From the NCBI RefSeq assembly GCF_964194025.1, contig NC_134479.1, forward strand, positions 21,576,001 to 21,640,000: 64,000 nt of DNA, given 5' to 3'. Position 1 is the stretch's first letter. Each line of letters begins with the position of its first letter. The notes under the pieces are model-generated. The model was not told the origin of the DNA and made no database searches. It saw nothing but the letters and a program-made list of their open reading frames with translations. This document shows positions 9,421 to 22,927 of the stretch, in pieces. Source of the stretch: Convolutriloba macropyga. Taxonomy: Eukaryota. A program made the position numbers and the translations under genes.

Positions 9421-12400
9421 AATTGTAAAACCTAAATTCACCATTACTATCTCTAATACCTTTATTATCAAATGGATCAATAGCTATTTTATATTGTTCC
9501 TTAGTTTCTAAGTGATGTATATTGCTATCAATAGTATAATTAGTTACATATTTACTTTTACCTTCATATATAGCACTAGTATAATCTTCCAAAATAATTT
9601 GGTTTCTAATAGTGGCTTTAGTTATACCTTTTAACTTTTTCTCTTCTTCTCTTTTAACAGTATTGTAACAATATGCTTTAGCTTTAAGGAAACATGCTTC
9701 TATAATAGTATCCTTAGGTAATTCATCCTTCATCTTACCCAACTCATTATTATGTAAAATATCTTTTATCTTATTCATTTCAGTTTCTATATTACTATCT
9801 AAAGGAATATTCATGTTTATAAATATACTATCTGTATCTGTGTAATGATAACTACAATCTAACTCTTTCTCAAAGTAATCATATATAGCTTTATACATGA
9901 ATAGTTTAGCTTTTTCTAATATAACAAATCCAATATAATTAAACTTATCTAATTTAACATTACCTCTTGTTTTATGTACGGCTACTAGATCATCATCGAA
10001 ATCTACAGAATATTTAAAACCAATATTTTCTACTAATTTAATATATATATCTACATCATTAACTAACTCTGCTTTCTTTCTACTGCTTTCTCTTCTTAAT
10101 ATTAAACTCAATATAAGGCTTTAACCGCTCACTCTTACTATACTCTAACTTTTGCTTAATTGTAATATCTTCCAACTTCAAACCACTAGCTCAATACCAA
10201 TCTAACATCTCACCATCAATTACATAATCTACCTTATCCGTTAACTTTAACATTAACTTCTCATTGGGTTTATATCCTTTCTTTTTATTTACATTTTGAT
10301 AATCTGTAAACTGTCCAATGTTTGCCCTAGTCTTTTCAGGAAAGAATGGATACTTGTTTGTTTTCTGTTTCAAGTCATCATTTTACTTTATATCAATAGT
10401 GTAGATATAACCCTTAGTAGAGCTAGAGCTAGTATATACCAGATCACATACTTTGATCTCACCAGTAGGTAAAGCTTGAACCATAGCAGAAGCATATAAT
10501 GAGTTGAAGTCTAAATATTTTAGATAATTCTCTTTCCCTGTATACTCAGGATCTATTTCTTTATTTTTACATTCTACATGACAACCACCTAATACTGAAG
10601 CTAACCCACCTCTAATACCATGTTGTATTGTATCATAAATATTAACTGTATTTTCTTTATAATACTTAAGTCTAACATTAGTATATTTTCAACCCACGAG
10701 TTAACCCAGGAGTAGAATATGTGTACCATGGATCTATTTCATAGTATTCTAAACACATAGCTCTAAATTTCTCAAATACATCAACTGATAACAATACATC
10801 TGTTTTAAGATACAACATCATATAATCCTTTATTGTCTCACATTTAATATCATTCCAACAATCAATTGCTTGCTTATATTCTTTATCTGTAATACCACTT
10901 TGTTTCAACTTAGAAAAGAATGCTTCCTTAGGTGATAATGTTGTTTCATGTAGTTTAACTATACTATCAAACCATTCATATGGGAATATACCTTTACGTC
11001 TTTCTAAGCCACATTTATTTAATGTTATACATTCTTCATTACTCAATGTCTTACTTATAGCATCTAAGCTAAGTGGATGGAAGAACCTAAACATATCTAA
11101 AGCTTTAGCATAACCCATATCAATATTAATATAATTCTCATCAATTTTAGTTAATACTTTTATTCTAATGGGACTCTGTCCATGGTGTTTCTCACCCATA
11201 TTCTTTGCTAGTTTAGTTATAAATAGGTGATTATCATAATTAGAAGAATTAAATGCATATATTGGTACGAATGTATTCTCAGCTTGGAGGTTACATTTTT
11301 TGTGAGCATATCCTCTAAATTTACCATTTAGATGATCATGATCTCTAACGATGTCTTCACCCAAGTTCTCATTACAATAATAACATCTACTATATAACGG
11401 AGTAATACTATCTTTTTTCAATGGAATATTTATACTAAATATATCTTTAAATAATTTATTATAATGATCTACTCTATCCACAAACCAATCAACTACTTAA
11501 TCACCACAGTTATATTCATACTTATCTTCTAATATATCAGGATATTCACTTTTTATATATAAACCAAAATCAATAGGAATGTGTTTACCATCTTTTATTT
11601 TACATTCAAAATCATAATACATTGCAAATGGTACTCTGTTTTTATAATGGAACTTATCAAACTTTAGATACTCATCTTTATGGAATGTTCTTCTACCTAT
11701 ATGTTTCTGTGTATTACATAAAACCAAATGTTTATTTAATGCATCTTCTGTTCTAAATGATACACAACATTTTAAACATGGATAACATTTATGTTTAGCT
11801 GATGTTCTTAATAGGAATGATACATTTTTACATAGGGAGTAATGATTATACCAATATAATATTTTGCACCCAACTAGATCATGATGATTAATTAATACAG
11901 GAGTAATAGTTTTATTCTTATTTAGATTGAATACATTAAATAATACTTTATGTTTATTTATTTCTTGTATTTTCTTTAAGTGATAATAATCATATGGGGG
12001 TGTAACTCCTATTGGTAATTTTATCTCATTAATATATTCTGGTTTATTATAATTACTATATCTACTGGGATTATGTGGCGCAGGATGTAGATATGCAATT
12101 AGACACCATAGTAAACATTTATTATCATTATTATGTATATTAAGTATATATCTAGACGTGAATTGTAGCTCTGTAGTACAACCACCACTTGGATAAAACC
12201 TATGAATACACATTGTCCTTTTAACAAATCGTTGCATGCTGCATCCAGATTGATTCATCTCTTGTTCCTTCATTCTAGACTCAAGTTCTCCATTCAATAA
12301 ATCCAAGTCATGTGCACCATTATATTGCCTAGTCATTATTTTAAAGGTGAATTCGTTTTCTTCTAACTTATCTTCTGTAGGTTTTGTATACTTAACTACA

Positions 12401-13759
12401 TCAAAGGTGTTAAACTTAATATGGGATGTATGTTAAGCAATGACTCCAGTATATTCAAGAATTTATGATCTTCATAATTACTACTGGTTGTTATTATTTG
12501 ATTATGTTTCACGTTATGATCTAATCCTAACTCATTAACTTTATCTCGCCACTTCTTATCAACAAGTTTTTTCTGTTTAACATTTTCTTTATGTTCATCT
12601 GATCCACTGTGTTCATTTTTATTGTTATATCTAGTATTACATATATTGCAATACCCTTCAGTTATTTTATCAGTGAAACTGGTTTGCAGACCCTTAGTTA
12701 TATCCGTATCTATACCCTTATCTATATCCTTATCTTTACCATCGGTGAAACCACTTCGCGGATTAACATTATCCAGATGCATCTTTGTTTTTAAATGTTG
12801 ATCCACACTGTATTGACTCAGAGTAGTCTTACCTATTACACAATCAAACTTACTCCCATTCTTTATTATTTTCCCATTAACTAGTCTTACATTGTTCCTA
12901 TGTTTTAATGTTGTTACATGTTTATTATAAGCAGTATTATTATCAAGATACATATCAGAACTATCACAAAGATTTATTCCATCTAGTTCAGGATTGTAGT
13001 AACCACTTCGTGTATACTTCTCATCCAACTTTTGTTCTATATCTTCATTAGTAACTTTTATTCCGTCCTCATTAGCACTCTCAATAATTTTACTTCTATT
13101 GTATAATCGCTCATTTTTTTATGTTTAAGTGATTGAAAGTGTCTTTTATAATTCTTTCGAGTTATCTCTTCATCACATTCTTCACATTTAATCTTATTTG
13201 TTTAAGGCTTTTGGACATAGACAAAATCATCAGATGAAGATGATTCTCTATCTGAGTCTAAATTTGAATCTTTAGATTGATCTAAGTCATTAGATTGATC
13301 TAAGTCTTTAGATTGATCTAAGTCTTTAGATTGACCAGTGAAACTGCTTCGCAGATCTAAATCTGGAAAGTATTTTGCTTCTGCTTTTCGCAATGACTCA
13401 CGCATATCTTCTTCTCTTTGTTTTAATTTTGCATCCTGTTTATCATACGACTCCTTTAATTCTTCATTTACACGATTAAACCTTCTGATTGATTCTAAAG
13501 ATTTTTCTAATTCTATCTTTTGTCTTTACTTATCTACTGGTTTGATTTCTTCCCTTGGTTTGTTTTTATTTGTTAACATTTGGACCGCCATGCTAGTAGA
13601 ACTAGATTGAGCTTTCTCACTTCCAGATTGGACTTGTCCACTTCCAAATTGGACTTGTCCATGAGATTGAGCTCGCTCACTTCCAGATTGGACTTGTCCA
13701 TGAGATTGAGCTCGTTCACTCGTGGAATGAATGTAACCGTTATAATCTTGTTGATTCAT
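9419..13759 (-). pseudogene. Protein-primed family B DNA polymerase polyprotein (N-terminal Zn fingers, TP/vOTU-like region, endonuclease VII/HNH insert, exonuclease, polymerase), disrupted
   Basis: Seven track ORFs join across in-frame stops (13526, 13202, 11497, ~10383, 10191) and frameshifts or deletions (~13115, ~12422, ~10695, ~10082). Motifs: DNKCLLWCLIAYLHP, YYDFE, CYYC..VRDHDHLNGKFRGYAHKKCNL, FNSSNYD, YLKTDV, YLDFNSLYASAM, YTDTDS, KAKAY, KLKGI. Confidence 0.93.
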
Positions 13760-13816
13760 TTTTATTTGCAAAATTTTGAAATAATATTATTTATATAGCT
13801 TTTCAATACTATAAAA

Positions 13817-14182
13817 ATGATTAGTACCAATTGTGATAAATATAAAAATAAGACCTGGTGTTGGAGTTGTGATGAGTGTCAAAGTAAACCATTCCAATGT
13901 TTTGTTTGTAATAAGATTATAACATATAGAGACAGACATAATCATTTGCAAGTGCACTTTAATAATCCCAATCAATATTTAGTATGCGGAATATGTAAAG
14001 TAAATAAACACATCTCTCAGTATAGATTTAAACATTTCTATTGTAGGTTATGCATATATCTCCATAGATATAGGTTTCATCATACAAAAGAAAGATTCTT
14101 AGAACATGCAAAGAAATATAATATCCACGAACGGGTTTCACCAATCAGCGAAGCTTGTTCCCAGATTGAAGTAAAGTTATAA
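13817..14182 (+). CDS. Small Cys/His-rich multi-zinc-finger protein of the Maverick
   Basis: CWSCDEC, FQCFVC..HLQVH (C2H2), CGIC, CRLC; TATAAAAATG start; head-to-head with polB. Confidence 0.7.
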   Translation: MISTNCDKYKNKTWCWSCDECQSKPFQCFVCNKIITYRDRHNHLQVHFNNPNQYLVCGICKVNKHISQYRFKHFYCRLCIYLHRYRFHHTKERFLEHAKKYNIHERVSPISEACSQIEVKL

Positions 14183-21998: not shown

Positions 21999-22026
21999 TT
22001 TTATATAATAATTTTTATATATAAAA

Positions 22027-22833
22027 ATGGATAAACGCGGTATATATTTTTTCTTATTATTATAATTGGAATTTGTTATTTATTATATGATTCAATACCA
22101 AGTAAATATACAAAACTAGAAGAAAGCTTTGGCGGATTTATGAATAGGAGTCTAGTTAGATTTGAATATGAAAAGTCACCATTACATACTATTGTTTATG
22201 GTGGAACTGGCACAGGGAAAACATATTTTATTAGACAATACTTAAAATTATACTCAGTCCAAGACCAAGACGAAAACCAAAACCGGGAACAAAACCAAAA
22301 CCAAGACAAAAACCAAAACCGGGACCAAAAACAAAACCAAGACCCAAACCAAAACCAAGACCAAGCAAAAATATAGTTATAGTGTGTAAAGATGACAGAG
22401 ACTGGATAGATGTAGCAATGGGAGCAAGCACAATGTTGAGTAGAGTAAATACATTAGTTAACGTTGGATATGGAGAAGGTTTGGATAATGATCTGCGAAG
22501 CAGTTTGGTAAACCACGAACAAAAATCGTTGGAGAACCACGAGCAAAGCTCGTTGGTAAACCACGATTAAAGTTCGTTCACTAATCTACGAAATGCAATA
22601 CAAAAAGAATATATAAACGACGAGGATGGGACTTTAAATAGAAAGGGAGGAAAGTTTTTAACCGGACTATATGGAAATAATGAAGAATTTAGAGAAGAGA
22701 TTATAAATTTTGTTAGAGATAAAAAAGAATTAGATTGATTTTGGATAAGAGATGTAAAACTAATACACTCAATACGTTAGGAAATAAATATTTAGCAGAG
22801 TGTATCACATATAAAGATAACACTAAAGATTTA
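22027..22833 (+). pseudogene. Second P-loop NTPase-like gene with a hydrophobic N-terminus and a Q/N/D repeat, decayed
   Basis: LHTIVYGGTGTGKTYFIRQYL, then a (QDQNQN)n tract and IVIVCKD; several stops and frameshifts; 3' end approximate. Confidence 0.6.
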
Positions 22834-22927
22834 ATTGAAATCATGGTTAAATTTTACCCGGCGAAGCGGTTCCACTGATGGACAAAGTCCTTTGATTAGG
22901 TAAATATTAAAGTTTACCCTACTATAA

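Follow-up and report, generated by a model that had tools for sequence, protein, structure and literature searches.

Results

A Maverick whose genes carry a 21-bp unit

The DNA analysed here, hereafter the window, is a 64,000-nucleotide stretch of a Convolutriloba macropyga contig (NC_134479.1, positions 21,576,001 to 21,640,000 of the forward strand). It holds a decayed copy of a Maverick/Polinton element of 14.7 kb (9261..23995, no strand assigned), in which a short GC-rich sequence recurs from gene to gene. We find that these occurrences are copies of a discrete 21-bp unit, which appears at new sites by gain, is restricted to these Mavericks in the DNA sampled, preserves the reading frame and maintains an architecture of two hairpins.

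The element was recognized by its terminal inverted repeats (TIRs) and gene content. The TIRs, of 160 nt each (9261-9420 and 23836-23995), are 96% complementary, and the genes comprise PolB, an rve integrase, a double-jelly-roll capsid protein, a penton-like protein, an A32-like ATPase and two Zn-finger-like open reading frames (ORFs). Pfam recovers the DNA_pol_B_2, rve and DJR-like_dom domains, while Pox_A32 was matched in relatives. Loci with related elements are denoted L001, L002 and so on; L001, 16.6 kb long and intact in appearance, carries 29 units, and its proteins were used in tblastn searches to count the frame changes and in-frame stops of the window genes, which are as follows:

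9425..13759, minus strand: PolB of the protein-primed type with an Endonuclease_7/HNH insert (Pfam DNA_pol_B_2, Endonuclease_7); broken, with at least four frame changes and at least five in-frame stops against the 1449-residue L001 protein
15261..16118, plus strand: rve integrase with three decayed units; no frame changes, one in-frame stop upstream and one in-frame deletion
18377..19612, minus strand: major capsid protein, intact and unit-free (Pfam DJR-like_dom, E = 5e-22)
19629..20387, plus strand: intact penton-like ORF, whose first codons coincide with a single weak unit
20483..21998, minus strand: homologue of the 533-residue gene of L001, with four units; one frame change and one stop
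22074..22854, plus strand: A32-like packaging ATPase; two frame changes and one stop, with about 38% of the relative covered
22928-23701: Zn-finger-like ORF

The 238- and 321-residue genes have one frame change and one in-frame stop each, and the 192-residue gene has two in-frame stops and no frame changes. The ORFs of the capsid and penton-like proteins and two of 139 and 136 residues are intact. The unit copies, with their scores in bits, are distributed through these genes thus:

12669..12691, plus strand: 31 bits; opposite-strand reading GLQTSFTD
12741..12763, plus strand: 36 bits; reads NPRSGFTD
12993..13015, plus strand: decayed unit of 13 bits, counterpart of the L001 copy at 16605; site occupied in the window and in L001 but not in L005
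13334..13356, plus strand: 38 bits; reads DLRSSFTG
14123..14166, minus strand: two tandem units with a 21-bp period, 28 and 27 bits (IHERVSP, ISEACSQ), at the end of the 136-residue Zn-finger-like ORF
15011..15033, plus strand: 36 bits; DQGTCFAD; segment present in L002, absent from L001
15508-15530, 15612-15634 and 15876-15896: three decayed units inside the integrase
16257..16279, plus strand: 35 bits; KSGNPLLGS; site empty in L005
19647-19669: weak unit at the start of the penton-like ORF
21151-21173 (plus), 21402-21424 (plus), 21468-21490 (minus) and 21837-21859 (plus): units in the homologue of the 533-residue gene
22491-22513, minus strand: unit in the ATPase
22857..22879, minus strand: 31 bits; between the ATPase remnant and the Zn-finger-like ORF

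PolB bears units in its N-terminal third.

The hairpins trace to one repeated motif

An earlier note on this DNA had listed 22 positions with GC-rich hairpins of 3-nt loops in the Maverick and had taken them for one dispersed family. All 16 hairpin strings that it quoted lie exactly where it placed them, and the remaining positions hold hairpins as it described. We compared the element with 200 dinucleotide shuffles and with three host flanks, using hairpin classes that were set after reading this claim. A general excess of hairpins was ruled out: those with a 3-nt loop and a stem of at least 3 bp number 331 against 375 expected, so that the triloop total is at or below expectation. The GC-rich mini-hairpins, in contrast, are enriched, with 14 against 1.0 expected for stems of at least 4 bp with at least three G-C pairs (z = 13), 13 against 2.1 for C-G-closed stems of 4 bp or more whose loop consists of purines only or pyrimidines only (z = 8), and 7 against 0.5 for C-GAA-G or C-TTC-G hairpins; no class shows an excess in the three host flanks. 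Nearly all of this signal comes from a single repeated motif of ~23 nt. In an independent test, a weight matrix trained only on relatives was run at a threshold of 20 bits: the 14.7-kb element yielded 12 positions, whereas 48.7 kb of host DNA yielded 0.

The family is narrower than the list from which it was first recognized, most of which falls in unit copies. Twelve of the 22 positions lie inside strong copies of the ~23-nt motif and four inside weaker ones (13004, 21148, 21161 and 21412), whereas the hairpins at 11171, 14974, 20416, 22539 and 22880 are not assigned to the family. Those at 15510, 15614 and 15885 score weakly, yet correspond to polymorphic blocks of seven residues among paralogous proteins (see below). 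The PolB peptide GEKHHGQSP at 11171, which had been read as an in-frame loop insertion, is a 10-residue excess over L001 rather than a clean seven, and was left unassigned. The tandem pair at 14123/14144, with its 21-bp period, is real. The C-NNN-G closure ascribed to the hairpins is true of one hairpin of the unit and not of the other.

Two G-N-A hairpins, one on each strand

The unit is made up of a 19-bp GC-rich core and one dinucleotide, which is AT in the lineage of the window. An intact natural copy (L001:6925-6945) reads AT CAG T GAA A CTG C TTC G CAG, and has three C-N-G triplets at a spacing of 8 nt. Triplets 1 and 2 enclose a G-N-A loop on the given strand, and triplets 2 and 3 enclose a loop with the complement G-A-A. 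By this arrangement of triplets and loops each DNA strand carries one G-N-A triloop hairpin, the two being offset by 8 nt; judging from the sequence, they would compete with each other on a single strand, though not in a locally unwound duplex.

Conservation and covariation were tallied over 63 distinct copies. The flanking A and T and the C and G of the three triplets are each kept in 43-61 of these copies, and in at least 54 for all but three of these positions. The middle letters of the triplets covary (A/T/A, G/C/G, T/A/T and so on), and a fourth stem pair is coordinated (T-A 32, G-C 12, C-G 5). For hairpin 1, 85% of the cells are paired, with 56 double-change cells, and for hairpin 2 the corresponding values are 82% and 37; none of 500 shuffles reaches the values of either hairpin, and the signal is lost when the partner is slid by 1-3 columns. 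Loop 1 is G-N-A in 50 copies (GAA 31, GTA 16, GGA 3), as is the complement of loop 2, also in 50, and the heptamer GCGAAGC occurs on one strand at 32 of 85 sites. The hairpins have the features of GNA-triloop mini-hairpins, namely G at loop position 1, A at position 3 and a GC-rich stem of 2-4 bp, and the link to such structures proposed in the earlier note is supported by the conservation of the loops on each strand. Mini-hairpins of the GCGNAGC type are nuclease-resistant and far more stable than predicted, and conventional thermodynamic models miss the motif (PMC13037366). The d(GCGNAGC) hairpin is a structural motif and not a genetic element; the G-N-A loops of our unit are alike, as far as the sequence alone tells, but its first hairpin is mostly closed by T-A, as opposed to the C-G of d(GCGNAGC).

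A simple dyad-symmetric protein-binding site was rejected, as the variable triplet positions are identical and not complementary across the dyad; for the same reason the covariation fits hairpins and not a duplex palindrome. The nematode piRNA upstream motif and Tc1-like and Stowaway-like ends were likewise discarded, as the unit sequences do not fit them in register.

Sites are filled by exactly 21 bp or empty

For sites carrying a unit, the left and right flanks were matched separately in other loci and the distance between them was taken. This distance is bimodal, being 0 bp in 25 comparisons and 21 bp in 31, over at least 11 independent sites of the window lineage. Thus, when sister copies are aligned, the same site is either filled or empty, with sharp ends and a constant length, in agreement with the suggestion that the motifs are presence/absence indels of a length divisible by three. 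The dinucleotide AT stands on both sides of filled sites and a single AT is found at about 9 of the 11 empty ones; being only 2 bp long, this junction fits a true duplication, microhomology or a dinucleotide carried by the element alike.

Differences of this kind are found between very close copies. L002 is 99.5% identical to L001, and the two differ by two single 21-bp units, a two-unit change in an array (seven against five units in the same orientation) and a 48-bp segment holding a unit. The L001 units at 6925 and 15155 are absent from L002, and that at 15155 is also absent from L004; these two recent inserts are identical to each other and to two other intact copies. The unit at window position 21837 is filled only in the window and is empty in six other loci (including L001-L004 and L006). 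By parsimony at window 21837 and L001 15155, the differences are read as gains.

L001 also has a six-unit array (14933-15058) with units of mixed orientation at an exact spacing of 21 bp, which is not explicable by slippage alone. Such phased arrays fit repeated insertion at the AT beside a resident unit. New copies arise at new AT sites in either orientation and pile up in exact 21-bp phase. Along L001 the orientation is biased, with units mostly on the plus strand in the left part and mostly on the minus strand in the right part.

One DNA unit read in six frames

At the 81 distinct sites in long ORFs, the six combinations of orientation and frame are represented 36, 13, 14, 12, 4 and 2 times. 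The resulting peptides are unrelated: DLRSSFTD, IHEVVTP or ISEACSQ, ISETASQI, DQGTCFAD, KSGNPLLGS and KSAKRFHRC. The peptides that had been noticed in common among otherwise unrelated proteins are real, and arise from the same DNA unit being translated in varied orientations and frames; the similarity resides in the DNA-level unit and not in a peptide motif. The rarest frame (2 of 81) is the one in which the commonest variant reads a stop, and the copies found there are of the stop-free G/C/G variant. This depletion implies that reading-frame integrity filters the copies, which argues for their translation and not for their being spliced out; a spliceosomal mini-intron was rejected on the same depletion and because the ends of the unit are not GT/AG. 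Since 21 bp equal seven codons and the GC-rich core is nearly stop-free, a unit adds a heptapeptide without breaking the gene.

The consequences for proteins are clearest in the integrase, for which 119 paralogues were compared. They contain internal polymorphic blocks that are seven residues wide and are translations of the unit:

PQGGSEP: 92 of 119 paralogues
GKAASGI: about 76 of 119
ETASQI[KN]: 9-12 of 119
ISETASQ: 7 of 119
GKPGYAQ: 5 of 119
LLGNPLH: 1 of 119

The three decayed units of the window integrase are three of these blocks (PQGGSEP, GKAASGI and GKPGYAQ); they comprise both stretches that had been suspected of being in-frame loop insertions (GEHPQGGFE and TGKAASG) and the hairpin at 15885. 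A single integrase site may hold zero, one or two units. The AlphaFold model of the window integrase was unusable (predicted local distance difference test, pLDDT, of 34), and the sequence was instead aligned with chain 7z0h_W of the Ty1 integrase, which was the one relative of solved structure to be detected (E = 1e-3); here the GKAASG block coincides with a gap that separates a helix from a strand.

In the capsid protein, by contrast, no unit-type insert was seen among 81 near-full-length paralogues, 49 of which are exactly 414 residues long. The claim that the major capsid protein is free of hairpin units thus holds in the window and across these paralogues. The same claim for the penton-like ORF needs amendment, as it has one weak copy at its start (19647), the counterpart of which in L001, at 9955, is strong (33 bits).

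Distribution and a second lineage

Three elements with ends that could be fixed, 48.0 kb in total, contain 61 units that score 20 bits or more, as against none in 57.9 kb of host DNA. The number of units per fetched 21-kb locus ranges from 6 to 38. An exact natural unit copy was not found in IMG/VR or in the JGI metagenome contigs. The capsid protein has 454 relatives, the best being 80-91% identical, and all those looked up come from one ENA assembly. No unit family was found in L009 and L010, whose capsid proteins are 32-36% identical and which offer little DNA to search.

The nearest capsid outside the window family is 40% identical and comes from another assembly, where the elements of L008, L011 and L012 lack the motif of the window lineage; the two assemblies are ERZ25071359 and ERZ25074608. 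The elements of L008, L011 and L012 have a different 19-bp core between TA dinucleotides (natural copy L008:12870-12892), which forms a G-G-A mini-hairpin with a 2-bp stem on one strand and GCGAAGC on the other. At 3-4 sites, a position is filled by exactly 21 bp or is empty with a single TA. On reading the natural copies, the two cores agree at 11 of 19 positions, and the arms of the hairpin common to both lineages are swapped in a compensatory way. Given the different cores and the same architecture, the design itself (19 + 2 bp, with one G-N-A hairpin per strand) is conserved between the two lineages.

Discussion

A probable frame-preserving insertion element tied to Maverick replication

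The explanation that we favor, and consider probable, is that the hairpins are copies of a tiny frame-preserving insertion element that lives in the genes of one Maverick clade and is tied to Maverick replication. The earlier note had offered a coding-tolerant micro-mobile element as one of two options, and this matches the filled and empty 21-bp sites, the junction dinucleotide, the phased mixed arrays, the use of six frames and the seven-residue indels of the integrase. We infer that the unit is a selfish, non-autonomous micro-element. While the Maverick replicates by protein-primed strand displacement, the unit would insert on, or be templated from, DNA of the Maverick that is single-stranded or unwound, with an AT (or TA) dinucleotide as its target, and its two mini-hairpins could form on the DNA so exposed. 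The absence of copies from the host DNA sampled suggests that the moving activity is supplied by the Maverick itself, the candidate agents being the Endonuclease-VII/HNH module in PolB, the integrase, or template switching by the polymerase at the dinucleotide. Copies would survive where seven extra residues are tolerated, such as low-complexity linkers, the N-terminal region of PolB and integrase loops, and would be purged from the capsid protein. More tentatively, and in our judgment somewhat short of an even chance, the clade might mobilize the shortest transposable unit yet, a 19-bp cassette inserting at a dinucleotide via a single-strand or cruciform intermediate that arises as the Maverick replicates, and remodelling viral proteins by heptapeptides. 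On that reading, the recurrence of one design with different sequences in two lineages would imply that the machinery reads structure and length and not sequence.

Several observations weigh against this explanation. The unit copies are related to each other, so that the covariation counts exceed the true tally of independent events. A pattern of filled and empty sites would arise equally if units were lost precisely between two AT copies, and the direction of change rests on parsimony at a few sites. The host DNA sample is only about 58 kb, and searches of the ORFs of the element with Pfam and PHROGs revealed no transposase-like or HUH protein. Finally, single units fold only weakly under the nearest-neighbour model (-2.3 to -4.2 kcal/mol, z -0.5 to -1.6), although this fits the mini-hairpin class, as such models do not capture the motif (PMC13037366).

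Among the alternatives, the one that we take most seriously, while still regarding it as unlikely, is that the units are cis-acting signals kept for the benefit of the Maverick, serving as priming sites, landmarks free of single-stranded-DNA-binding protein (SSB), nuclease stops or packaging marks on displaced strands, and that their spread reflects selection for the number of sites. The conservation of G-N-A loops on both strands, the maintenance of the stems by compensatory changes, the recurrence of one design with different sequences in two lineages and the orientation bias along L001 all speak for it, as do similar mini-hairpins at phage single-stranded-DNA priming sites and the early promoter of phage N4 (PMC13037366). 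Yet the positions vary greatly, even when two copies share 99.5% identity, many copies are decaying, their number varies from locus to locus over the range given above, and gene orientation together with peptide tolerance explains the orientation bias equally well. This proposal also leaves the origin of new copies unexplained, and so complements an insertion model and does not replace it. The same polymorphism bears on the other option of the earlier note, a DNA-level code for single-strand protection, packaging or protein binding: the positions are too polymorphic for site-specific signals, while a dose-type signal is possible. By analogy with the roles known for mini-hairpins (priming, SSB exclusion, nuclease stops; PMC13037366), a useful role of the hairpins would be compatible with the data.

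Two further alternatives account for less of the data. An ordinary coding minisatellite, changing by 21-bp slippage and by recombination or gene conversion between element copies without insertion at new sites, would accommodate the same-orientation arrays that change by whole units (7 against 5), the frequent position of units beside other short coding repeats and the hundreds of paralogous elements available for recombination. We regard it as improbable, as units standing alone are known from at least 10 different genes or sites and take both orientations and six frames, as mixed-orientation arrays keep an exact phase, and as single units were gained where all other sampled copies are empty and, at L001 6925 and 15155, with unchanged flanks. 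Least credible of all, and in our view barely worth entertaining, is similarity at the level of protein or mRNA, whereby a short linear peptide such as D-L-R-S-S-F-T-D, or an mRNA stem-loop, was selected in several proteins: 36 of the 81 sites do share one orientation and frame with D-[LP]-R-S-[SG]-F-T-D-like peptides, but the same DNA is read in six frames to give unrelated peptides and the coordinated triplet changes alter residues. An mRNA structure was rejected since the mRNA-sense strand shows no surplus of G-U-type mismatches (27 vs 41), and an Rfam search returned no family matching the unit.

Relation to known short mobile elements

Rickettsia palindromic elements are in-frame insertions of bacteria, about 100-150 bp long; unlike our unit, they lack a 21-bp modularity and a tie to a virus-like element. 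The mobile GC clusters of yeast mitochondrial DNA (e.g. GC42; PMC4478555) come close in several respects: they too are GC-rich hairpins in a very AT-rich genome, have a 2-nt target (AG in their case) present twice at filled and once at empty sites, are polymorphic for presence between close genomes and occur as singles and in arrays. Their stems, too, are more conserved than their loops (PMC4478555). They differ in being organellar, 42 nt instead of 21, mostly intergenic and of a length that does not preserve the frame, whereas the carrier of our unit is a nuclear, virus-like DNA element, with almost every copy in an ORF. Given this carrier, which lies in an intron of a host gene, and the location of the copies in ORFs, the unit is not a mitochondrial GC cluster of the yeast type.

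The double-hairpin elements of Allomyces mitochondrial DNA (work cited in PMC4478555) and the repetitive hairpin elements of sponge mitochondrial DNA (PMC2800124) are likewise very short and mobile, with one or two hairpins; either orientation occurs, and some copies lie within genes. In contrast to the unit, they belong to organelles, exceed it in length and vary in size, and they show no fixed 19 + 2 design with one hairpin per strand. The coding palindromes of Nematomorpha mitochondria (PMC6649704) are also among the closest systems. No nuclear or virus-borne case is among these closest systems, nor one of comparable shortness or with a length held to a multiple of three.

MITEs, or miniature inverted-repeat transposable elements, resemble the unit in being quasi-palindromic, the halves of the unit being complementary at about 8 of 11 positions; they are non-autonomous and have a short duplicated target, as may also be true of the unit. 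However, the unit is 2.5 to 40 times shorter and is confined to one mobile element instead of being genome-wide. We rejected its membership among the MITEs on its 21 bp, as against roughly 50-800 bp, its only quasi-complementary halves and the failure to find a matching transposase or partner. In the literature searched there is no description of such units in Mavericks, nor of any in a eukaryotic virus-like element, nor of one so small and strictly frame-preserving.

If the proposed insertion element is real, it would lower the known size limit of mobile DNA units and provide a route for a parasite of a parasite to live in an almost entirely coding genome. The unit would then naturally mark the single-stranded intermediates through which Mavericks replicate. 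It would also explain the seven-residue cassette differences among the proteins of this clade, with a bearing on their annotation and phylogenies. The filled and empty sites are usable as markers for dating element copies.

The carrier and its surroundings

The Maverick lies inside an intron of about 19.7 kb of a host UDP-glycosyltransferase gene, the exons of which are at 3185-4303 and about 24034-24498. This gene is the first of a tandem cluster of two-exon UDP-glycosyltransferase genes with introns of kilobase size (segments 3185-4303, 23968-24498, 33335-34507, 42856-43323, 47494-48612, 51386-51853 and 61221-62339). With the Maverick in an intron of a gene of such a cluster, the host gene structure is animal-like. 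In a collection of 5.8 billion proteins, only ENA proteins were found related to the flanking UDP-glycosyltransferases, with a best identity of 98%, which suggests poor sampling of the host lineage. Searches for tRNA genes and Rfam families gave no landmark for the host either.

At its tip (9261-9325, 65 nt), the left TIR folds back on itself as a perfect palindrome of 20 bp (DNA fold -20.3 kcal/mol, z = -9.5). It is missing from L001, whose tip diverges after about 18 nt; the right TIR is expected to mirror it, given the 96% match of the inverted repeat. The Recombination endonuclease VII/HNH-type module of PolB (PF02945) precedes the exonuclease domain at 10681-11481 on the minus strand, and is also present in L004, L006 and L012; both Maverick lineages with 21-bp units have it. 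In L004 (15224-18940) PolB is on the opposite strand relative to the capsid gene when compared with L001, which means that sublineages differ in the order or orientation of their genes. L007 (1-21245) contains duplicated and inverted element pieces, a second capsid fragment and the same unit arrays three times, and is a nested or rearranged cluster of Maverick elements.

Outside the element, the host segment at 35001-37000 has a GC content of 41-47% and a strongly negative GC skew of -0.24 to -0.37, unlike its surroundings, and runs of N occupy 41631-41793, 46800-46938 and 49261-49525. Within the element, many other micro- and minisatellites keep the coding frame; their periods are 12, 18 and 39 nt, they encode N/D, S/G, Q/N/D and P/N/L runs, and they are found at 21211-21501, 23054-23324, 22245-22365, 13262-13333, 13604-13739 and 16132-16203, and units often adjoin them. 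In the segment 22481-22576, the unit at 22491 is followed by three 24-nt repeats, which encode L-V/E-N-H-E/D-Q-x-S, each with a short hairpin of its own (for example, ACGAGC-AAA-GCTCGT at 22539); these may be a second, 24-bp in-frame repeat family.

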